A DNA stretch of 64,000 nt, taken from contig NC_047025.1 of NCBI RefSeq assembly GCF_902652985.1, positions 6,386,001 to 6,450,000 on the forward strand, written 5' to 3'. The DNA comes from Pecten maximus. Taxonomy: Eukaryota. This document shows, piece by piece, positions 19,882 to 63,188 of the stretch. Under the pieces are notes generated by a model. It did no database searches. It worked only from the letters and a program-made list of their open reading frames with translations, and had not been told where the DNA came from. The first letter of the stretch is position 1. Every line of letters begins with the position of its first letter. The translations under genes and the position numbers were made by a program.

Positions 19882-21022
19882 GTATGTCTGGTCCACCTCA
19901 GACTGTCAGTTCATGGATGGGTGACCATGCTCCTTAAGCTTTGTACCCCTGCAGGTGAACGTTACATTTGGTGTTAGAGGCCAGGCCTGGCATCCTGTAG
20001 GGCACCACCAGACAGGGGAAGCACAACATTCCTTGAGACATGATGGTGACCAAATGGGTCTAATCATGAGGTAATATAGCTATACACTGTTGTAGCGGAA
20101 ATCATTTGACAAAATTTTGATTACTTTAAACTCAAAAAGTGTTAAATGCTTTTCTGCTACAACAGCTAGCAGCTACGTAGTCATGAGGCAGCACTAGCTG
20201 TCATGACAACAAGATGAACAGATATCAGCGTGTATATATGGTGAGGATGTGCGAACCTCATCAGTAAAGGGTTGACCGTTCGTGGATGTGAAGTGCGATA
20301 TGACTGCTCTGTTGTACCCAGTGGTTCATATTTCATGTTTTCCTGTCGAAATCTTATAAGGGTTTTGGAGTGAGAGAAATTTTAACTATTGCATTGGAAT
20401 TAGGGTATTGGTAAATTTAATTCAAATAATTTTTTCCGACTCTCAATCGTCTATTTACGGAAAATTTTATAACTGATCTGAGTGGAAGGGTTGAGATTGT
20501 CAGAACCTTTTGGCCTACAGTTTGGGTTGCTGAACAGCTTTCTTATAAAGTCTGATTATGAGTTCCCTCAGGCTCAAACACTAGAAATTTAACATTTAGA
20601 CGTACAGATGCAAAATAAAAGACGTCTATTTGTCAGACAAAATGCATGCCTTTGTCTGATGTTATCTTTTAAGGCCAGATGCAGCTCTAGATCTGGCTAC
20701 AAATTTAAAGAATATATACAGGTGTTCTGCTGGAACTGTAGTTTTGCATCTATTCATGATCATGTTCTAAGTTCCCTGGTAAGTATATATATGTACTCTT
20801 CGGAATACTTTCACGTGCGGGGGAATTCAAAATATCTCTGCCGTTGGTCGCATAGCGTTCTAGTGTTTGAACATGATGCAGTCACGCTAGTATCCGCCTT
20901 CGGCCCACGTTTGCCGAAGGGTTCATTGTGGTTTCCTCAGTTACTAAAACATTATTCTTATTGTATTTTATTGTATTTCCAGTACTTCTTATATATATTA
21001 TGTGATTGTATTTGTGATTTTT

Positions 21023-21065
21023 TGTGTTTTGATAAAGGGGCGGATTGCCTCGAAAATTTAACAAA
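21023..21065 (+). ncRNA. Minimal type I hammerhead ribozyme-like motif (U3-A8 variant), probably Penelope-derived
   Basis: tgtgtt-TTGATAA(A)-ggggc ggatt gcctc-GAA-AATT-T-aacaaa: 5-bp stem II, palindromic 4-nt stem III, 5/6-paired stem I. Confidence 0.5.
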
Positions 21066-21125
21066 CCTTATTGTTTACACTGTTTGAATTACTTCTTTGC
21101 CCCATATATGTATATATATATATAT

Positions 21126-29723: not shown

Positions 29724-31825
29724 TTGGTATCTCCTTAAGTCTTTGTGGTATCTCCTTAAGTCTTTTTGGTATCACCTTAAGTCTTTTTGGTATCACCTTA
29801 AGTCTTTGTGGTATCACCTTAAGTCTTTTTGGTATCTCCTTAAGTCTTTTTGGTATCACCTAAAGTCTTTTTGGTATCACCTAAAGTCTTTTTGGTATCA
29901 CCTTAAATCTTTTTGGTATCTCCTTAAGTCTTTTGGTATCACCTTAAATCTTTGTGGTATCACCTTAAGTCTTTTTGGTATCACCTAAAGTCTTTTTGGT
30001 ATCACCTAAAGTCTTTTTGGTATCACCTTAAATCTTTTTGGTATCTCCTTAAGTCTTTTTGGTATCACCTTAAGTCTTTTTGGTATCACCTTAAATCTTT
30101 TTGGTATCTCCTTAAGTCTTTTTGGTATCTCCTTAAGTCTTTTTGGTATCTCCTTCAGTCTTTTTGGTATATCCTTAAGTCTTTTTGGTATCTCCTTAAG
30201 TCTTTTTGGTATCTCCTTCAGTCTTTTTGGTATCACCTTAAGTCTTTTTGGTATCTCCTTAAGTCTTTTTGGTATCACCTTAAGTCTTTTGGTATCACCT
30301 TAAGTCTTTTTGGTATCACCTAAAGTCTTTTTGGTATCTCCTTCAGTCTTTTTGGTATCACCTAAAGTCTTTTTGGTATCTCCTTAAGTCTTTTTGGTAT
30401 CACCTTAAGTCTTTTGGTATCACCTTAAGTCTTTTTGGTATCACCTAAAGTCTTTTTGGTATCACCTAAAGTCTTTTTGGTATCACCTTAAGTCTTTTTG
30501 GTATCTCCTTAAGTCTTTTGGTATCACCTAAAGTCTTTGTGGTATCACCTTAAGTCTTTTTGGTATCTCCTAAGGTTTTTTGGTATCTCCTAAGGTTTTT
30601 TGGTATCACCTAAAGTCTTTGTGGTATCTCCTTAAGTCTTTTGGTATCACCTAAAGTCTTTGTGGTATCTCCTAAAGTCTTTTTGGTATCACCTTAAGTC
30701 TTTGTGGTATCTCCTAAAGTCTTTTTGGTATCACCTTAAGTCTTTTTGGTATCACCTTAAGTCTTTTTGGTATCACCTTAAGTCTTTGTGGTATCTCCTT
30801 AAGTCTTTTTGGTATATCCTTCAGTCTTTTTGGTATCACCTTAAGTCTTTTTGGTATCTCCTAAAGTCTTTTTGGTATCACCTTAAGTCTTTTGGTATCA
30901 CCTTAAGTCTTTTTGGTATCACCTTAAGTCTTTTTGGTATCACCTAAAGTCTTTTTGGTATCACCTAAAGTCTTTTTGGTATCACCTTAAGTCTTTTTGG
31001 TATCACCTTAAGTCTTTTTGGTATCTCCTTAAGTCTTTTGGTATCACCTAAAGTCTTTGTGGTATCACCTTAAGTCTTTTTGGTATCTCCTAAGGTTTTT
31101 TGGTATCTCCTAAGGTTTTTTGGTATCACCTAAAGTCTTTGTGGTATCTCCTTAAGTCTTTTGGTATCACCTAAAGTCTTTGTGGTATCTCCTAAAGTCT
31201 TTTTGGTATCACCTTAAGTCTTTTTGGTATCTCCTAAGGTTTTTTGGTATCACCTTAAGTCTTTTTGGTATCTCCTAAGGTTTTTTGGTATCACCTAAAG
31301 TCTTTGTGGTATCTCCTAAAGTCTTTTTGGTATCACCTTAAGTCTTTGTGGTATCTCCTAAAGTCTTTTTGGTATCACCTTAAGTCTTTTTGGTATCTCC
31401 TAAGGTTTTTTGGTATCACCTTAAATCTTTTTGGTATCTCCTTAAGTCTTTTTGGTATCTCCTTAAGTCTTTTTGGTATCTCCTTAAGTCTTTTTGGTAT
31501 CTCCTTAAGTCTTTTGGTATCACCTTAAGTCTTTTTGGTATCACCTTAAGTCTTTTTGGTATCTCCTAAAGTCTTTTTGGTATCACCTTAAGTCTTTGTG
31601 GTATCTCCTTAAGTCTTTTGGTATCTCCTTAAGTCTTTGTGGTATCACCTTAAGTCTTTGTGGTATCTCCTTAAGTCTTTGTGTTATCACCTTAAGTCTT
31701 TTTGGTATCTCCTTAAGTCTTTTTGGTATCACCTTAAGTCTTCGTGGTATCTCCTTAAGTATTTTTGGTATCACCTAAAGTCTTTTGGTATCTCCTTAAG
31801 TCTTTTGGTATCACCTTAATTCTTT
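29724..31825. repeat. 21-bp minisatellite (ggtatc(a/t)cct(t/a)aagtcttt(t/g)t), ~100 copies, in SLC38A7 intron 7
   Basis: Directly visible; explains the KSFWYHL/IPKRLKE pseudo-ORFs. Confidence 0.97.
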
Positions 31826-32376
31826 GTTGTTATGATATGGAGTAATCTGGCTAATGTAATTGTTGGTACATAATTATAGGGAAGGAGGTGGGCGTATTAG
31901 TTAGCCTTTTGCTTTCAGTTCTGTTAAACCAATTTAAAAACATCCTAAATAAATATTACTGTATGTATAAAATGGAACGTTCGTTTTGTATATGTTCGTT
32001 TTGTATATATATATGTTTTCATTGGTTTCGTGGTTGCCGTGGACCCACAAATATAAATATAATTAATATTGTTGCATGTGTTAATTATGATGTTAATTTT
32101 ACACACAAAATAATTTGAAAGCTCCAAACCATGAAAATGTATGCACAAACATTTAATGTTATATAATATTTAAAAAAGGTAAAAAAGTAATGATATGTTA
32201 TTGAATAATTAATTGATTGAATAATATTGATATAAATAGATTTGAAATAAATTATTCTTTGAAGCAAGTTAACCCACCAAGACACTATGTGTAATTTTTA
32301 ACAAAATTACTGCATTAAAGTTTTAAATTAAAGTTTTAAATTTGATATTGTTTATTTTCCTATCTACGCCATTCAG

Positions 32377-34742: not shown

Positions 34743-36733
34743 CAGGCACTCGCCTCTTCTGTCAATATACCTTATATACCAGAGCATATTAGATGTATTG
34801 ACAGTGAAGGCAAAAGTATATTAGGTGTATTGACAGACGAGATGAGAGTATATTAGATGTATTGACAGTGAAGGCAAAAGTTTATTAGGTGTATTGACAG
34901 ACGAGATGAGAGTATATTATGTGTATTGACAGACGCGGCGAGAGCTTATTAGGTGTATTGACAGACAAGGTGAGGGTATCTTAGGTGTATTGACAGACGA
35001 GGTGACAGTATATTAGGTGTATTGACAGACGAGGAGAGAGTATATTAGGTGTATGACAGACGAGGAGAGAGTATATTAGGTGTATTGACAGACGAGGTGA
35101 CAGTATATTAGGTGTATTGACAGACGAGGAGAGAGTATATTAGGTGTATTGACAGACGAGGTGAGAGTATATTATGTGTATTGACAGACGAGGTGAGAGT
35201 ATGTTAGGTGTATTGACAGACCAGGTGAGAGTATATAAGGTGTATTGACAGACGAGGTGAGAGTATATTAGGTGTATTGACAGACAAGGTGACAGTATAT
35301 TAGGTGTATGACAGACAAGGTGAGAGTATATTAGGTGTATTGACAGACAAGGCCAGAGTATATAAGGTGTATTGACAGACAAGGGGAGAGTATATTAGGT
35401 GTATTGACAGACGAGGTGAGGGTATATTAGGTGTATTGACAGACGAGGTGAGAGTATATTAGGTGTATTGACAGACGAGGTGACAGTATATAAGGTGTAT
35501 TGGCAGACAAGGCCAGAGTATATTAGGTGTATTGACAGACGAGGTGAGAGTATATTAGGTGTATTGACAGACCAGGTGAGGGTATATAAGGTGTATTGAC
35601 AGACAAGGTGAGGGTATATTAGGGTATTGACAGACGAGGTGAGAGTATATTAGGTGTATTGGCAGACAAGGTGACAGTATATTAGGTGTATTGACAGACG
35701 AGGTGAGGGTATATTATGTGTATTGACAGACGAGGAGAGAGTATATTAGGTGTATTGGCAGACAAGGTGAGGGTATCTTAGGTGTATTGACAGACAAGGG
35801 GAGAGTATATTAGGTGTATGACAGACGAGGTGAGGGTATCTTAGGTGTATTGACAGACGAGGAGAGAGTATATTAGGGTATTGACAGACGAGGTGACAGT
35901 ATATTAGGTGTATTGACAGACGAGGAGAGAGTATATTAGGTGTATTGACAGACGAGGTGAGAGTATATTAGGTGTATTGACAGACTTGGTGAGGTTATCT
36001 TAGGTGTATTGACAGACGAGGAGAGAGTATATTAGGTGTATTGACAGACGAGGTGAGAGTATATTAGGTGTATTGACAGACAAGGTGAGAGTATATTAGG
36101 TGTATTGACAGACGAGGTGAGAGTATATTAGGTGTATTGACAGACGAGGTGAGAGTATATTATGTGTATTGACAGACGAGGAGAGGGTATATTAGGTGTA
36201 TTGACAGACGAGGAGAGAGTATATTAGGTGTATTGACAGACAAGGTGAGGGTATATTAGGTGTATTGACAGACGAGGTGAGAGTATATTAGGTGTATTGA
36301 CAGACGAGGTGAGAGTATATTAGGTGTATTGACAGACGAGGAGAGAGTATATTAGGTGTATTGGCAGACAAGGTGAGGGTATCTTAGGTGTATTGACAGA
36401 CAAGGGGAGAGTATATTAGGTGTATGACAGACGAGGTGAGGGTATCTTAGGTGTATTGACAGACGAGGAGAGAGTATATTAGGTGTATTGGCAGACAAGG
36501 TGAGAGTATATTAGGTGTATTGACAGACGAAATGAGAGTATATTAGGTGTATTGACAGACAAGGGGAGAGTATATTAGGTGTATGACAGACAAGGTGAGA
36601 GTATATTAGGTGTATTGACAGACAAGGCCAGAGTATATAAGGTGTATTGACAGACAAGGCCAGAGTATATAAGGTGTATTGACAGATGAGGTGAGGGTAT
36701 ATTAGGTTCATTGACAGACGAGGTGAGTGCCTG
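34743..36733. mobile_element. hAT-like non-autonomous element filled with a 32-bp minisatellite (~60 copies)
   Basis: TIR caggcactc(g/a)cctc(t/g)tctgtcaat; 8-bp TSD tgcataca/tgaataca; unit gagagtatattaggtgtattgacagacgaggt. Confidence 0.85.
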
Positions 36734-55600: not shown

Positions 55601-56915
55601 ACAATAACACATTGTTACGAATTTTATCATGTGTCATATCACTTGTGAAACAAGCATAGTTATCGGATAGATGGAAATTTCACACAAGTAAATGTTTGGA
55701 TAATAAAATAAAGATATAAATGTGCCCAGGGTAAGTGTAAAATGTATCTCAACCAAAGGGGAATTCCTAATTAGAATGTGGACAATTTCAAAAATTTACC
55801 AAAAAAAACTTAAAATGTTGACAATCTTATGCGTTTTATTGCCGTTACATTAAAACACAACATTCCTGTCGTCGCGTGACATAATAGAATATTCGACTGA
55901 CGTGACGTAATCATAATGTTCAGTGAATAGTTGTGAATGGAAAATCCCCACACTTAAATCCTAGAGGTGTTTACACAATCTTTAACTAATTTGGGGATAA
56001 GACATGCAGTGGAATATAGTAAGCTAACCAATAAGAGGAGTGTTTTGAACGGATAAATAGAGGATATCTAACAGTGTCTTCAGTAATACCAAATATATTT
56101 CACGAGTGGGGCTAATATTTTGATATTTTTCACGAGTGCGAAGCACTTGTTATTCTGTTTATTACATTTTTTTATCAACGAAAAACCTACCCCGTATGCT
56201 AACTAGGCCTACAGCGAAAGTTTGCATACAAGAAAAGTAGTTCCCCCTGTCCAGGTGCTGACATATATGTCAGGCTTTCTGATTGGTCAATTATTTTCGT
56301 ATTTTCTAATCATTAATTTGATTGGTCAAATCAGCAAAAGTGATATTTTTCACTAGTGAAAAATATCACTTTTATAGAATGAATAATTTTTTATATTTCA
56401 CTGGTAAAAATGTAATAAATGATATAATCTCTGAATCTGTTTGTCTACTTATGTTACATTGACGTTAAATCAATGCAAGGTATTGCTGAAGAGACGTATT
56501 GATCGTCTACATGATTTGAATGAGTCATTTTATTGTTTACAAAACCCCATAGACTATTATCTTAACACGGAAGAATAACACAAGTCGCATATATACGATT
56601 TATATGTTGTTTTTTTATTAATCTTTTGTATAAAAATTGTACAGAATTATGAACTATTGTGATTTTCAAAATGATTAATCAGTCACATGGATATGCCGTC
56701 ATTTTGATTATAACTTGACTTCACAACAAGGCAAAGGTAAAACTCTCAGACAGATAGGACGGGGTAGAAAAACCTTACACTGTATATCTCATGAAATCTT
56801 TCTGTCACATTTTACAATGAAAACAATAAAAATAATTTACTATCTATTGTACCATACTGCGAAAGGACAAAACAAAAGAAATGATCCTCCTTTTTAGATA
56901 TTTGCAAATCAATGG

Positions 56916-56976
56916 ATGAAGAAGTACTTTATCATCATACATCTGTACATATTTATACAAGGTTCAGGCATTCTTG
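56916..56976 (+). CDS. Pseudo-OTU x4 / ApoL fusion gene, coding exon 1 (signal-peptide-like)
   Basis: ATG MKKYFIIIHLYIFIQGSGIL G|GTAATA; the phase-1 donor fits the acceptor at 57066/57067. An acceptor ttttag at 56897 is in frame, so further upstream coding is possible. Confidence 0.6.
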
Positions 56977-57066
56977 GTAATAGCTGATAAATATGTAGGA
57001 CAACTGTTAAGCCTTTTGTCGGTCAGGCTATGTTATTTAAACCGAGTAAATAACTGATAACCGCAG

Positions 57067-58281
57067 AAGGCTTTAACAACATTGGTGTGAATGCACCAGA
57101 TACAGTATACGTCATGCCGGACCAAATTACCACGGAACTGGACTTACCATTAAATTCCTTAGTGGAACGAGGCTACAAAGTTAAATATAAGCCAGAAGCT
57201 TGGGATGATGATAGCTTCTATCGTATTGTTAGTTCTGAAAAATGGCAGAGTTTCGGACATCCGAAGGCTGCAAGAAGTGAAATAGAGAAGGTACAAACGG
57301 ACAAAGACCATCTGTTATTCTTCCTGGCATTTGAACCAAAATGTGATACAAGTATCACTGAAGCCATCGATCTTAAAGAAAATTTGAAAAATGACTTGAA
57401 CACGAGCAAAGCTGCGAGGGCCATCCCCACGCGTCGTGACATATATGCAGCAGCCGAATTTCTTCAAAAAACCATACATATGATCTATTGGCACCCCAAC
57501 GATGTTCAAAAAGAAGTCTTCAATCCACCCTTTTCATCACACGGTGCAGACGATATCATATATATTCTATCAGTCAGTCAAGAAAACAAAACTGCGTTCA
57601 TACAGTTAACAAAAATGGAAGATGCTGCTGTTATAGATATTGCTAAACACAGTCAGTGTCACGGAATGACGTTCCGCAGATCATTTAGTCATCGACCTCA
57701 CGCTACTAGAGAAACAAACACAGAACTTAGCGAGGGGAGTTGGGAAGTTGACAAAAGCGTGGAAAAGAGTAAGAGGAATTTCCTCTTCTGTTCGTTGAGT
57801 AAAGCATTTTATGGAACACAGGGTTACCATTGGTACGTACGCGAACTCATAGTAAAATTTTTGCGAGAGGAGACTTTGGCTGAGGTTTTCTTTGAAAGCA
57901 AGGACGAAGAGGCTGATAAGGAAAAACAAACCTTAACAGAAAAGCAAAAAGTCACCAAAAAGAAAACGGAACGCGAAGAATATATATCGAGTTTACAAAA
58001 AGAATCCGTAGATGCTGGGAGGACAGAACTCTATGCAGCCGCGTTCATTTTCAGAACACGGGTTTTCGTGCAAAGACCTAGTCAAGATTACTGGGACGCT
58101 TACTTCCCTCTTTGCGTGCCAGAAAACACACGTCAACGATCTTATATTACCTTGGAAAAATTCCACAAACTACTTGTTTCAAGAGAAAGAGAATGCAACT
58201 GTTTACTGAGAGAACCGCCAGTTGAATACCTCGATAGTATCAGCAGAGAAAGACTGATGTCGTTGGCTACAAAGTTTGTTG
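57067..58281 (+). CDS. Pseudo-OTU x4 / ApoL fusion gene, exon 2 (OTU-like repeats 1 and 2)
   Basis: 1215-nt open exon, cag|AA ... G|GTAAG. RNFLFCSLSKAFYGTQGYHWYVRELIVKFL...EEYISSLQKESVDAGRTELYAAAFIFRTRVFV parallels OTU DGNCLFRA...YG...H..R...EEY...WGG.ELxA. Confidence 0.85.
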
Positions 58282-59429
58282 GTAAGCGTTTTCGCTCCAT
58301 CAGTAATGCTTAAGGGGCTTCGTTTTAAACAAAATGTTCTGGTTTTGCCTTGTTGTAATGCAGCATTTTTTGTTGATATCGGCTGTGGTGATATCCGGAA
58401 TGTTATCCATGTTTATATCTTTTATATCTGGACATACTTCGGATCAAAGTTTGATAAAATCTCTTTGATCATTTGAAGGATAAGATTTTTATGTTCATTT
58501 TCGTACTCATCTCTTCTATTGGCCCCGTTGGAGTGTCACGCGTATGAAGGTTTATGTTGCACGCGTTGTTGAAAAAAACCTAAACAGATTTATAATTGAA
58601 TAGGTGTATGATACTACATTTTGTTAGTTCTACTCCTTTTATAGATAGATGCGCTTTTATGGTGCCCTAAGGGCACTATAAGAATCTTTCCACTAGTTCC
58701 AGCTTACCCAAGTAGTCATGTGACCAGCACGAGACTTTAGTGTGGAAAAAACACCTCCTCTTTTCAATATAGTTAGAAATTAGAAAGAGATGTCATACAT
58801 TCGTCCAAAAATAAAAAAAATATATAGATATGATGGAGAACGTATTCGATTATTCATAAACTGTATGCTTACAACTTCGTTTTCTGATTGTGAAGACACC
58901 ATGCACTTGTAAGCTATGCGACGTCATCGTAATGAACATATTGCAACAATGAACAACAATGTACAATAATATATTTTTAACATAATTACACTAAAGAACA
59001 ATGGAGCGCACAATCGCATCTTCACCTTTTTGATAACTTTTGGAAAAATCTGCTTTCACGCAAGGCTGATTATATTGAAAAGTGTGTCAGATGAGTTAAC
59101 TGAGATCTTGCAAAGTCCTTCAAATTCACCCATGGGCGCAAATGTATACAAAACGTATATTAACCATGTCGATCAGGTACATCATGTAGATATGAAATTA
59201 AGGACACTTAAACTGTTTGACATCAGCTGCTTAACCTCGACTGTTCCTGCAGGTAACACACGTGACTGCTCACAACTAAGTTTTATAATAATCGTGATTA
59301 TAACATTTCCAAGATTGTTAGTTTTCTGTTTCTGCATAGGGATATTAACACTACATTTTGTCCCTCATGGAAAGCTATCAGACCTCAAAATTGCGAACAT
59401 AACATCTTTTGCATTATTTGATTATATAT

Positions 59430-60017
59430 GGTAGCACACTACAGTAGGACAGCCTGGCCATGGGCAATTTTTTTGTTAAGCAAATATATTATGATATGCA
59501 TAAAAATGAAAAAATAAATGTACACTATAATTGGTATATTCTGTATGAAGTAGTACATACAGGCTTCACATTTGTTAAAACAAAAATTAATAAATTGGTT
59601 CCGGCTTTTAAATTTCCGGATTTTCCGAAAGTGTGTTTAGATAGCGGAAAAACTCAATTTACAACATATGTCAAAACAAGATTAATTCTATCTTTGGAAT
59701 AGAGATATTTAATTTTAGATAGGTTTTAGAAAAAAAAATTGTGTAGAGAATGGTGTTATTTTGGGTCAAATATCATAATATTTTGCAATTTTTGAGCATT
59801 TTTTAAGCTGTTACCATGGTATTCACAGCTCTAAAAATCACAGAAAATATCGGTTTACTTATCCTTCAGAGCTGTATTAAAGTTGCAAATGTTGTACAGA
59901 TTACAAATATATATACTTTATTAGAGGTTATATGTAGGGTTACCTGGCAATGTTTACATATCTAAAACATGTGCCATATTTTTCAGAATTGGGCATTTCT
60001 ACTGTACACTGCTACCT
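59430..60017. mobile_element. Intronic MITE-like element (possibly Kolobok-type)
   Basis: Imperfect inverted termini ggtagcacactacagtag / ctactgtacactgctacc around an AT-rich interior. Confidence 0.45.
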
Positions 60018-60064
60018 ATATTTGTAATATGTATAGTGATTACATCGTTATCGTGGATTTTCAG

Positions 60065-60216
60065 TGAACAAAAGTGGCTCGATATGTTGTCCAACAACGA
60101 CGAGACACGCCGGACATCACAATCATTTGGACGAATTCTGCAAAAAGGAGAAGACCACATACAAAGCTAGAACAAAGATAATTATCTTTTTTTGCCAATC
60201 ATCAGATACTATTTAG
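60065..60216 (+). other. Orphan/alternative exon duplicating the Cys/His-rich start of exon 3
   Basis: ttttcag| then phase-1 frame VNKSGSICCPTTTRHAGHHNHLDEFCKK, similar to exon 3 VKTREQVCCPGEGRHGRHRHLDAFCQT. No GT donor after the motif before the TAG at 60214-60216. Confidence 0.65.
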
Positions 60217-60258
60217 GCGTAATTAAGTAAGAATACAAATATTCGCTTTTATTTGTAG

Positions 60259-60777
60259 TGAAGACAAGGGAGCAGGTATGTTGTCCTGGAGAAGGGAGAC
60301 ATGGTAGACACAGACACCTGGACGCCTTCTGCCAAACGACGACGAAGATACAACGCCCACAAGACAGGCATATGCCTTCACCAGACGTCCCGGGTATAGA
60401 TGGAAGGACATTGGACAAAGTATCCGGAGAAAGTGCTACCTTCCAACATTGTCTCCACAAACTGATATACGGAACCGATGAAGTTTCTGAAGACTTTGAG
60501 GTACGGGAAGAAGCTCCCGATAAAAACTACCTAGAGTGTATAGCACAATGGCTCCAGAAAAGCATTTTCGTTTATTCTTCATTGTCTAGTTCATGGGAGG
60601 TCTACAATCCCGACGAAGGTTCAGACATCGAGAAATATTTGACTGGAGAAAGGAAGAAATGCCGGTATTACATTACCCTTTTCTACGACCACTGTGCTGA
60701 CAGATACGACATCATCACTCCCTTAGAGGGCTGCAATTGTGCATTGAGGCCACCAACGTTTGATAAAAGCAATTCAG
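60259..60777 (+). CDS. Pseudo-OTU x4 / ApoL fusion gene, exon 3 (OTU-like repeat 3, internally shortened)
   Basis: ttgtag|TG ... G|GTAAG, 519 nt; KVSGESATFQHCLHKLIYGT...LECIAQWLQKSIFVYS...YITLFYDHCADRYDII...CNC. Confidence 0.85.
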
Positions 60778-61253
60778 GTAAGATCTGTACTTATGCAATT
60801 TAATTAGATGCTATTGTTAATGTCATTTTTACATTCTTAACGACCCAGCAACATCAATACCGCTAAAATTATGCATACATAAATCGTTGTAATTATAGAG
60901 TGATGCGACCTGAAACGGAATTGAAATATTATTGTTTTGCGATTATTTAGGTTCATGGATCTACAAAACAGGAATGCAGACACTTTTGATTTTCGTAACT
61001 AAGAGAAAGTTTTAGTTTTGTGATATTTTAAATGATAGAATGCCTCATAATGTTTTCCAACAGTGATGATTACAGTCATAGTCGCTTTAATTTACCTCCT
61101 CACTTGATCCATATACACGATAACGTAAGCGGCGTATATACATGTACTATAAAAATGCCGGTTAATGAATGTGAAGACAAATGTACCTTCAAAATGTAAA
61201 AATCATATTGGTAGGAAATAGATAAACAGTAATAATTTAATTTTTATTAATAG

Positions 61254-62021
61254 ATGAAAAACGGTTCATTCGGAAAGAAGACAGACATAATCCTCTCGTG
61301 GAATTCTTTTTGGACGATGGTGTCAATAACTGCTTCAGCGATGAAAAACAAAAAATCTTGCCGACGGAGGGAGGTTGGCAAATATGTGAAGCATATCGTC
61401 GACCAGATATGAAATTTCGTGAAGTAGATGAAGGGCATGGTACACATACCTTGTTCACATGTATCAGCATGGAGATATTTGGGAATGAAGAACAAGCTGC
61501 AAAAATTGAAGAGCTAGTTACCAAAGAAATGCTAGAGAATGCTGGGATATACGTCAGCTTACTCGATGTGAAATCCCGTTTGAAACACAGTACAACGACT
61601 TTGCAGCAGGAAGTTGACAAAACCCTGGTGCCTTTCCTCCTTCTCTTTGGTCATTTACCATTGCTTGCCGCAGCGACAGTATTTCAAACGCCTATCTACG
61701 TGTTGAAAGTTGAACCTACTGAGGAGAAAGGCTGGAAGAGTAGTTGGTGCTCATTTACACAGGTCAGAAGAAAGAACGCACCAAGAAATATGCCTTCTAT
61801 ACAAAGCAAATGCCGACAAGACGGGAATTCTGACAGTTATTACGTAACGCTTCTCCAGGATCCATACGGGAATTTCTTCCGAATCATACCAAATGGAGGA
61901 AAGGTATGCAACTGTCAGTTAAAAGAGCCCAATGTACCAGAAGAATATGTTTCATTTCCTCTATTGCCAGAGAAAATTCTTTCAAAATCGATTGCTTCAC
62001 AACGCCAACTTGATTGGGAAG
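61254..62021 (+). CDS. Pseudo-OTU x4 / ApoL fusion gene, exon 4 (OTU-like repeat 4)
   Basis: taatag|AT ... G|GTAAG, 768 nt; EVDEGHGTHTLFTCISMEIFGNEE...LLAAATVFQTPIYVL...YVTLLQ...CNC. Confidence 0.85.
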
Positions 62022-62412
62022 GTAAGTTTATTGCGCAGAAATTTAAATCACTAAATATTTTTTACCAAATGCTTATGTTTCAATTGCAATAAACACATAT
62101 TCAGCGTATCCATAAATTCTATAAAAAGATCATCAATAAAAAATTATTATTATCATTAAACATCATCTGCTTAGAATGTATCGTGACCCTTTCATCTAGA
62201 CGATTCTCGATCGAACGGGAAAAAGTACGCATATCACGTGTTCGACCACATGAGCTTTCTCTCTTACTAAGGTATCCTTCATCATTAAGGCCCGTCGCGT
62301 GCTTCCATCTGGACACTCAAGAGTAATTAAAATAAGTTCCAAAAATTGATTCACAATTTTTATACAATTGTCTCAAGATAAGCGTAGAGCATAATCGACT
62401 TTTGTTTGGTAG

Positions 62413-63188
62413 TTGCAGATGCTGAAATCACACAAAAATTCCGGGAGCTGGATAACGCACTGGGCAAAAACCTACAGAACCTAAGACAGATGAAGAAACT
62501 GGTATCTACACAACTGCTGATGTATGACGTTATCGTCGCATTGTTTGAAGGTCGACGACGCAATATCAATATAGCCTCTATAGCAGGTAGCTCCACATCA
62601 ACCGTTGGTACTGTGCTGCTCATATTAGGTATCGCCTTGGCACCTGTAACTATGGGATCAACATTGGGCCTGACTGTGGCCGGCGGGGTTATTTCTGTCG
62701 TTGGTAGTGCTGGTGTGATAGGTTCTAGGGTAGTCGAGGGCGCACTCACCAAATATCAACTCCGTGCTTTAATAGTTATCCATGAACTTTTGGATACTTT
62801 ATCGAAGGACGCCGCTCAATCAAACGATACATTTTTAAAGCTTGTATCCGAAATGGCGTCCTTTGTAGAAGGGGATGTGGGCGACCTTGGAGAAAATACC
62901 TCTGGTATCGGGCTGGGTATGTCGCCGGCTGTCGGGAGATTAATGGGCAGTTTTCATATTGTTCCTATCATTATTGCTAGGGCCACAGCCCAAGTATCCT
63001 CCATAATTGTCGGAAGCGTTGTAGGGGGTCTTTCTCTTTTCATAGACGCTGCAATCATTGCATATGCCGCTTACAACCTGAACAAGGGGAACAAAACGTC
63101 GACGTCAGAAATTATTCGAAAAAATGCACATTTGCTCAAAGCAATCAATGAGAAGCTAGAATCGTACGTACATGGCAATGTGAAGTAA
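62413..63188 (+). CDS. Pseudo-OTU x4 / ApoL fusion gene, terminal exon: apolipoprotein L domain
   Basis: NIASIAGSSTSTVGTVLLILGIALAPVTMGSTLGLTVAGGVISVVGSAGVIGSRVVE (ApoL LAPxTxG hydrophobic hairpin) and C-terminal GGLSLFIDAAIIAYAAYNLNKGNKTSTSEIIRK. Phase-1 acceptor at 62412 (alternative 62418); AATAAA at 63256-63261. Confidence 0.88.

Follow-up and report, generated by a model that had tools for sequence, protein, structure and literature searches.

Does the end of this stretch of scallop DNA encode one protein in which repeated enzyme-like domains are joined to a membrane-active domain, and if so, what might such a fusion do? We analyzed 64,000 nucleotides of the Pecten maximus genome (NCBI RefSeq assembly GCF_902652985.1, contig NC_047025.1, positions 6,386,001 to 6,450,000 of the forward strand), hereafter the window, whose first letter is position 1. 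In this window, a reading of the sequence alone had proposed a five-exon gene at 56916-63188, encoding four OTU-like deubiquitinase (DUB) repeats devoid of catalytic residues (R1 to R4), followed by an apolipoprotein L (ApoL) domain. Our results show a real, transcribed gene that is conserved in pteriomorph bivalves (scallops, oysters and pearl oysters), lineages whose separation is generally dated to hundreds of millions of years ago. On balance, we lean toward a cytosolic protein of two modules, in which the array of apparently dead OTU domains would serve for recognition or regulation and would control the membrane output of the ApoL domain.

The four exons at 57067-58281, 60259-60777, 61254-62021 and 62413-63188 (exons 2 to 5) are, as had been claimed, each open in the required frame, to a TAA stop codon at 63186-63188, and the splice sites read from the window are canonical and place all introns in phase 1. 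The donors are gtaagc, gtaaga and gtaagt; the acceptor of exon 2 ends in cag and the next three end in tag, these three with polypyrimidine tracts. The codons split at the three joins read GTG, GAT and GTT, none of the three being a stop codon; searches and structure models were run exon by exon. R1 and R2 both lie in exon 2, and R3, R4 and the ApoL domain occupy one exon each, a phase-1, domain-per-exon layout compatible with assembly through duplication and shuffling of exons.

The 5′ end of the gene differs from the sequence-only reading. The five pieces that it had joined do sum to 3339 nt, but its first exon and its length of 1112 aa found no support. The proposed exon 1 (56916-56976, plus strand) is AT-rich, its hydrophobic peptide has no homolog, and it shows neither RNA cover nor conservation; it was rejected as coding sequence and, on the same grounds, as a signal peptide that would make the protein a secreted one. 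The longest 5′ RNA contig begins at 57089, and the alignment of the orthologs and of a tandem paralog begins exactly at the Met encoded by the ATG at 57114. Because exon 1 has no RNA cover and the relatives align from that Met, we place the start codon there, so that the most likely coding sequence is 57114-63188, in four exons, which at 3231 nt encodes 1076 aa. The 5′ end of exon 2 ahead of this codon (57067-57113, plus strand), which follows a putative acceptor at 57066/57067 and whose 15 codons are unconserved in paralog and orthologs, is probably 5′ untranslated region. At the N terminus supported here, neither the hydropathy profile nor the ortholog alignment shows a hydrophobic leader or signal peptide.

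We then examined RNA contigs placed on 56900-62899, which come from three runs, of low depth, within a single study. These runs contain 21-40% of the words sampled from a stretch that is ~53% exon, and their contigs cover exons and leave introns at depth 0. The junction between R4 and the ApoL exon, for which a check had been set in advance, was found in RNA: an 806-nt contig of run X1 joins 62021 to 62413 across GT..AG borders, its shorter arm measuring 151 nt, and thereby documents in-frame splicing of R4 to the ApoL exon. The join of 60777 to 61254 is present in contigs of two runs (X1 and X2). No contig of the three runs covers 58019-58281, the join of 58281 to 60259 or the proposed exon 1; for the stretch 58019-58281 and the join that follows it, all the support comes from colinear orthologs and from the transcript-derived homolog P0026. 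The contigs of a fourth run (X6) continue uninterrupted across introns at depth 2, indicating that this run represents genomic DNA.

The same domain order, with pieces like exons 2, 3, 4 and 5, recurs at three further loci of the P. maximus genome. A tandem paralog lies 7 kb past the end of the window (C11:6456769-6490158; L011 and L012) and is 57-72% identical to the window exons, and two others, at C10:9204407-9199114 and C6:9086890-9093079 (L010), share 30-39% and 24-33% identity with them, respectively. Queried with exon 2, a set of 1.84 billion representative proteins yielded no more than 22 relatives. Colinear full-length proteins of 1030-1125 aa were found in Mizuhopecten (P0005, P0006 and P0031), Ylistrum (P0023), Ostrea (P0042), Saccostrea (P0014 and P0021) and Pinctada (P0013). 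The accessions of the bivalve homologs are XP_021350079.1, XP_021353104.1 and KP79_PYT14392 for Mizuhopecten yessoensis, XP_060080896.1 for Ylistrum balloti, XP_048769415.2 for Ostrea edulis, XP_061176773.1 and XP_062585211.1 for Saccostrea, and KAK3095854.1 for Pinctada imbricata. Most of the long relatives match both the OTU and the ApoL models of Pfam, and the relatives of ~390 aa are single-exon fragments of such genes. A 1105-aa homolog (P0035), added like the Ostrea protein through cluster look-ups, is encoded on a 4098-nt assembled contig, which we take to be a spliced transcript from another species. The Argopecten “apolipoprotein L3-like” protein P0001 (335 aa), to which exon 5 is 61% identical, starts in the R4 tail and continues into the ApoL domain, and thus spans the R4-ApoL junction; the codon at this junction and its flanks are conserved in the Mizuhopecten and Argopecten models. 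An architecture that recurs at four loci of this genome and in six or more further species is conserved and no accident.

The ratio of nonsynonymous to synonymous substitution rates (dN/dS, or omega), computed against the tandem paralog, is 0.35 for exon 2, 0.41 for exon 3, 0.21 for exon 4 and 0.22 for exon 5; these values are rough because dS is near 1. The dead OTU domains thus appear as constrained as the ApoL domain. These data bear on the possibility that the gene model is an artefact or a decaying pseudogene, with the ApoL exon belonging to a separate gene or the repeats being transposon debris. Such decay is visible in the tandem paralog: its ApoL exon (L012:7390-8159) is broken in frame twice, 29 kb separate the exons that resemble R3 and R4, and its NCBI model P0002, named “histidine N-alpha-methyltransferase-like,” is an apparent chimera with part of the ApoL exon; the shallow RNA coverage from a single study points the same way. 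Against it stand the spliced contig that joins R4 to ApoL in frame, the conserved junction codon and flanks, the domain order common to four loci and to six or more other species, omega values of 0.21-0.41 and the lack of stops in any exon. We consider this explanation largely refuted already and give it very little credence.

We next asked what the repeats are. Using profiles built from the window gene and six homologs, hhalign gave probabilities of 99.3% for R3-R4 (E 4.5e-20), 98.6% for R2-R4, 96.6% for R2-R3 and 90.8% for R1-R2, and pairwise BLAST linked R2, R3 and R4; by these comparisons, the four repeats are homologous to each other beyond chance. Their relation to OTU domains is only partly visible to Pfam. 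On the window exons, the OTU model (cut-off 23.3 bits) reaches 19.3 bits in exon 2, on R2 (E=0.0018), and has no match in exons 3 and 4; it exceeds the cut-off in the homologs P0013 (38.7 bits), P0031 (27.3), P0004 (26.7) and P0021 (25.3). In the Pfam check suggested by the sequence-only reading, ApoL thus scores above its cut-off in the window itself, and OTU does so in the homologs. Among PDB sequences, the family profile matched OTUD1 weakly (E 0.037), and a four-sequence R4 profile found nothing relevant.

The structure models are clearer. The AF2 model of exon 2 from the Met (57114-58280) has a predicted local distance difference test score (pLDDT) of 82 and a predicted TM-score (pTM) of 0.84, according to which R1 and R2 are confidently predicted to pack as a rigid unit; the model of exon 4, which contains R4, has a pLDDT of 73.5 and a pTM of 0.76. 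With both models, the top Foldseek and VIA matches are OTU domains only, with a Foldseek probability of 1.0 for R4. In VIA alignments, R1 (model residues 3-167) matches OTUD1 with Z 13.7 and a root-mean-square deviation of 3.3 over 143/149 residues, OTUD3 with Z 13.6 and OTUD5/DUBA with Z 13.2; R2 matches Cezanne (Z 11.5, residues 207-389) and OTUD2 (Z 10.4, residues 208-369), and R4 matches OTUD1 (Z 11.1, 136/150 residues). A protein-language-model search with exon 4 also returned OTU clusters, at 0.93. In these models, R1, R2 and R4 adopt the OTU papain-like fold over nearly the whole domain, and R3 is assigned to the OTU family through profile comparison alone, by its 99.3% hhalign match to R4. 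The four OTU-pattern repeats of the sequence-only reading are thereby recovered, three by modelling and one by profile.

The repeats are not equivalent copies. R1 spans 57114-57653, R2 57654-58281, R3 60259-60777 and R4 61254-62021, all on the plus strand. R3 is a shortened form that lacks the helical insert, and R4 carries an insertion before the Cys position. A Cys-Asn-Cys...Pro-Pro tail follows R2, R3 and R4 directly after the His-loop strand, from 58194, 60732 and 61907, respectively, and R3 opens with an invariant Cys-Cys...His-x-His motif (60279-60317). Both motifs look like metal (zinc-like) sites at the domain joints.

To read the catalytic positions, the repeats were aligned with intact OTU domains of the same genome. 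At the position of the Cys in Gly-Asp-Gly-Asn-Cys, R1 has Ser (57213-57215), R2 Phe (57780-57782), R3 Thr (60438-60440) and R4 Thr (61448-61450). At that of the His in Asn-His-Tyr-Asp, R1 has Ala (57594-57596) or Thr, R2 a gap and, displaced by one residue, a His (58164-58166), R3 Arg or Asp (~60702-60704), and R4 Asn (61871-61873). A placement of the His loop at the Tyr-Tyr-Ile-Thr-Leu strand was rejected, the alignment to intact relatives putting the His one strand later. No repeat of any homolog aligned has a Cys at the catalytic position: in R4, it is replaced by Ser in most homologs, and HMMER aligns this Ser to the catalytic Cys in the Asn-Cys-Leu-Tyr-Arg motif of OTUD1; in distant relatives, R1 keeps Asp-Gly-Asn, followed by D, E or S. 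With none of the four carrying the catalytic Cys, or a His at its position, the prediction that the repeats of the window gene are catalytically dead is well supported.

Could the repeats nevertheless be enzymes, using a Ser or Thr nucleophile or cleaving a different bond? The Ser in R1, the Thr in R3 and R4 and the Ser in R4 of most homologs would allow for it, as would the C6 paralog (L010) and Ylistrum P0023, the only proteins in which R4 has the His: in this older paralog group, the canonical Gly-His-Tyr-Asp (followed by Arg) is kept beside the Ser. A Cys-to-Ser change beside an intact His loop is how “substrate trap” DUBs are made in the laboratory, and we know of no active papain-fold DUB with Ser in place of Cys. 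Moreover, none of the four repeats of the window combines a candidate nucleophile with a His at the catalytic position, R2 having Phe. We thus regard enzymatic activity of the window protein as highly improbable.

The second module lies in the last exon (62413-63188, plus strand, including the stop codon), as had been claimed. Pfam PF05461 matches exon 5 with 42.8 bits (E 6e-11, cut-off 25.9) and the homologs with 28-54 bits, and a genome-wide six-frame scan also recovers the ApoL match of exon 5. The strong part of the match covers model positions 83-146 of 298. Residues 53-104 and 182-220 of the exon, encoded by 62571-62726 and 62958-63074, form hydrophobic segments of ~50 and ~40 residues that exceed a Kyte-Doolittle value of 1.6 over 19 residues. 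Judged by this profile match, exon 5 is a genuine ApoL domain. We also observed that, in the family profile, the first segment (62571-62726) weakly resembles the hydrophobic heads of the alpha-pore-forming toxins MakA of Vibrio and Nhe of Bacillus (E 0.027-0.03), a similarity that is no more than a hint at the way in which ApoL hairpins might enter membranes.

How does this protein compare with known systems? In vertebrates, ApoL proteins are known as effectors that act on membranes and consist of a single domain. Mammalian APOL1, APOL3, APOL6 and APOLD1 (PF05461) have in common with exon 5 the ApoL match and long hydrophobic segments of the helix-loop-helix type that characterizes the membrane-insertion region; the mammalian APOLs are essentially single-domain, whereas the window protein has ~820 residues of pseudo-OTU array before its ApoL domain. 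OTUD1, OTUD3, OTUD5/DUBA and the nairovirus vOTUs (PF02338, MEROPS C85) share the predicted fold with the repeats, which keep the helix motif of the Cys loop and the central Ala-Ala-Ala helix; OTU DUBs, however, retain the catalytic Cys and His, and the window repeats lack the Cys, lack the His at its position and fall below the Pfam cut-off. To our knowledge, no tandem array of four OTU domains has been described. Pseudo-DUBs such as FAM105A/OTULINL and the MPN- partners of BRCC36 have a DUB fold without catalytic residues and are presumed to act in binding or scaffolding; they are single domains in other contexts, none fourfold and none fused to a membrane-active domain. Gasdermins, NLR-type fusions and MLKL are alike solely in the proposed logic, by which a regulatory part controls a membrane-permeabilizing part within one polypeptide, and have no homology to the window protein. 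As predicted for the window protein, APOL3 is cytosolic and has no signal peptide (PMC12248542).

The closest parallels are the bivalve homologs, in which four OTU-like repeats and ApoL are arranged colinearly with the window gene, with the same catalytic loss and the same Cys-Asn-Cys and Cys-Cys...His-x-His motifs. These proteins are 20-58% identical to the window gene product and are automatic predictions only; NCBI and UniProt already list them under the names “uncharacterized protein” or “Apolipoprotein L3,” and their Pfam tags for OTU and ApoL were likewise assigned automatically. A literature search within the library available, in which “OTU” was swamped by “operational taxonomic unit,” returned nothing on OTU-ApoL fusions or on the function of bivalve ApoL proteins, in agreement with the earlier statement that no characterized protein has this architecture. 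The sequences are therefore not new, yet the OTU-ApoL architecture is undescribed: a member of the ApoL family that carries a novel array of pseudo-enzymes.

We further looked for the origin of the repeats among the OTU domains of the genome, which number at least 73 matches, many of them inside open frames of 2500-3200 aa. One such locus (L027, C6:31996500-32006400) contains OTU, Herpes_teg_N, DUF6570, Helitron_like_N and PIF1; the presence of the OTU domain together with Helitron_like_N, PIF1 and DUF6570 identifies it as a Helitron transposon. For each of the four repeat profiles, the highest score is with the OTU domain L016, which belongs to a single-copy 551-aa open reading frame (ORF) on C13 (67.8 bits for R2, 52.4 for R3, and 49.9 and 28.8 for the others), and the second-best match of the R2 and R4 profiles is a Helitron-type ORF with OTU and DUF6570. 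The one cellular OTU fragment compared (L013) gave no match to the repeat profiles. Moreover, the intact relatives L015 and L016, which outscore the other OTU domains with the repeat profiles, carry the Cys-Asn-Cys...Pro-Pro tail directly after the His-loop strand, in common with R2, R3 and R4. Based on the profile matches and this tail, the repeats belong to an OTU clade that is carried by Helitrons, and they were possibly domesticated from it. Members of the clade (the 551-aa ORF and the Helitrons L026 and L027) keep Gly-Asp-Gly-Asn-Cys and His-Tyr and look active; they have one OTU per protein, and none is linked to ApoL. The window gene itself has introns and syntenic orthologs, and a Pfam scan found in none of its exons a match to Helitron_like_N, DUF6570 or PIF1, domains that the true Helitron L027 contains.

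Two observations concern the clade as such. The 551-aa ORF (C13:17724551-17726203, minus strand; L025:2952-4604), the closest intact relative of the repeats, is a single exon with a long, disordered N terminus rich in Ser, Arg and Asp, and its apparently active C-terminal OTU domain is flanked by Cys-x-Cys...Pro-Pro motifs. The genome also holds dozens of Helitron copies with frames of 2500-3200 aa (OTU, Herpes_teg_N-like, DUF6570, Helitron_like_N and PIF1), many of them without stops; L026 (C13:27523200-29700), which contains a run of N, is another example.

This kinship raises the possibility that the dead OTU domains act as decoys or guards: they would mimic the OTU proteases of Helitrons, viruses or bacteria, and their binding by the factors or inhibitors of those proteases, or by pathogen effectors, would release ApoL. 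The closeness of the repeats to the OTU clade of the genome's abundant Helitrons, with the tail in common, and the presence of nairovirus OTUs among the structural neighbours are consistent with such mimicry. However, the likeness to viral OTUs is no greater than that to the cellular OTUD1, OTUD3 and OTUD5, the closeness to the Helitron clade was gauged against the single cellular fragment L013, and the idea is purely inferential, with no candidate partner known; we consider it improbable.

In the two-module reading toward which we lean, the pseudo-OTU array would be a non-catalytic recognition or regulatory module, whose ligand may be the C-terminal tail of ubiquitin or of a ubiquitin-like protein, or a chain of these, held without cleavage. 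Since the OTU fold evolved to hold ubiquitin, this is the most economical candidate ligand, and substrate-trap DUB mutants, with Cys changed to Ser or Ala, hold ubiquitin without cleaving it. The ApoL domain would be the output, inserting into membranes and forming channels or pores, and the array would set where or when it inserts. By analogy with the mammalian APOL proteins, a role in innate immunity is plausible. The functions put forward in the sequence-only reading, by which the repeats would sense or count ubiquitin, act as decoys or autoinhibit ApoL, are candidates only.

Several points weigh against this reading. The RNA support comes from one study of low depth, in which neither the 5′ end nor the join between exons 2 and 3 appears in the RNA of P. 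maximus. The Ostrea RefSeq isoform X2 (P0043, 885 aa) ends after R4 in an alternative tail without ApoL, indicating that the two modules can also be expressed apart; the OTU array may thus also be made on its own, as this predicted isoform suggests. The insertion before the Cys position in R4 and the lack of the helical insert in R3 represent remodelled loops of the catalytic cleft, by which binding of the ubiquitin tail may have been lost. When R4, as residues 1-230 of exon 4, was paired with one ubiquitin unit of the polyubiquitin that the same genome encodes (L006:1495-1722, minus strand), the predicted complex scored 0.00, a value that, obtained without controls, speaks neither for nor against the interaction. 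Finally, ApoL proteins are not all lytic, the roles of APOLD1 and of intracellular APOL3 being regulatory (PMC12248542).

Because the ubiquitin docking gave no answer and ApoL is not always lytic, a serious rival is that the protein is a membrane-anchored scaffold, in which ApoL would tether it to an organelle membrane or form a small ion channel as part of housekeeping membrane dynamics, and the array would be an interaction platform unrelated to ubiquitin or immunity. The non-lytic vertebrate proteins provide precedents, among them endothelial APOLD1 and APOL3, which regulates PI4KB as well as membrane dynamics (PMC12248542), and the predicted rigid packing of R1 and R2 and the remodelled cleft loops would suit a platform. 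Four copies of one ligand-binding fold, kept throughout the history of the family in pteriomorphs, rather suggest a repeated ligand. In addition, fairly fast evolution (paralogs 25-67% identical, omega 0.2-0.4) and a lineage-restricted distribution with tandem duplicates and one decaying copy are more typical of defence genes than of housekeeping scaffolds. We hold the scaffold to be rather unlikely, and the two-module reading remains the one that we prefer.

A bolder form of the two-module reading would make the protein both reader and killer in a single polypeptide: four substrate-trap OTUs, possibly domesticated from the Helitron-associated clade, would read the chains of ubiquitin or ubiquitin-like proteins that coat cytosolic pathogens or damaged membranes, and would deliver or unlock the ApoL pore, the four sites setting the chain length or density that is sensed. 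If true, this would be an invertebrate, one-protein counterpart of the mammalian defence by ubiquitin coat and APOL3. This version is in our estimate decidedly unlikely.

The fusion of the array with ApoL touches the open question of how ApoL proteins are aimed at their targets. If the array binds signals of the ubiquitin type, the protein would naturally couple marking by ubiquitin to an attack on membranes, in a form directly open to test, and would be a rare array of pseudo-DUBs, and perhaps a case in which host defence has taken over protease domains related to transposons. If it is a scaffold only, the gene is still a clean case of domain-per-exon assembly of a lineage-specific protein. 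In either case, this is an unstudied family of candidate immune genes in aquaculture bivalves, which suffer from Vibrio and herpesvirus disease.

Other features of the window lie outside the gene product. Intron 2 contains a high-copy repeat at 59430-60018, at which contigs of all four runs reach depths of 100-900 and have many loose ends at both borders, and which is probably an expressed transposon fragment. In each of the three RNA runs, a contig at depth 15-19 leads from sequence that ends at 62728, within the ApoL exon, through 15 foreign letters to 59461 in this intron-2 repeat; another transcript may have given rise to it through a brief match, by chance or by repeat. Ahead of the gene, positions 1-56900 are nearly free of long ORFs, the only one of at least 130 aa lying at 20608-21087 (plus strand, 159 aa). 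The spikes of AT and GC skew in the composition of the window are due to two minisatellites with 89% matches, at 29724-31833 (21 bp, 101 copies) and 34781-36727 (32 bp, 61 copies).

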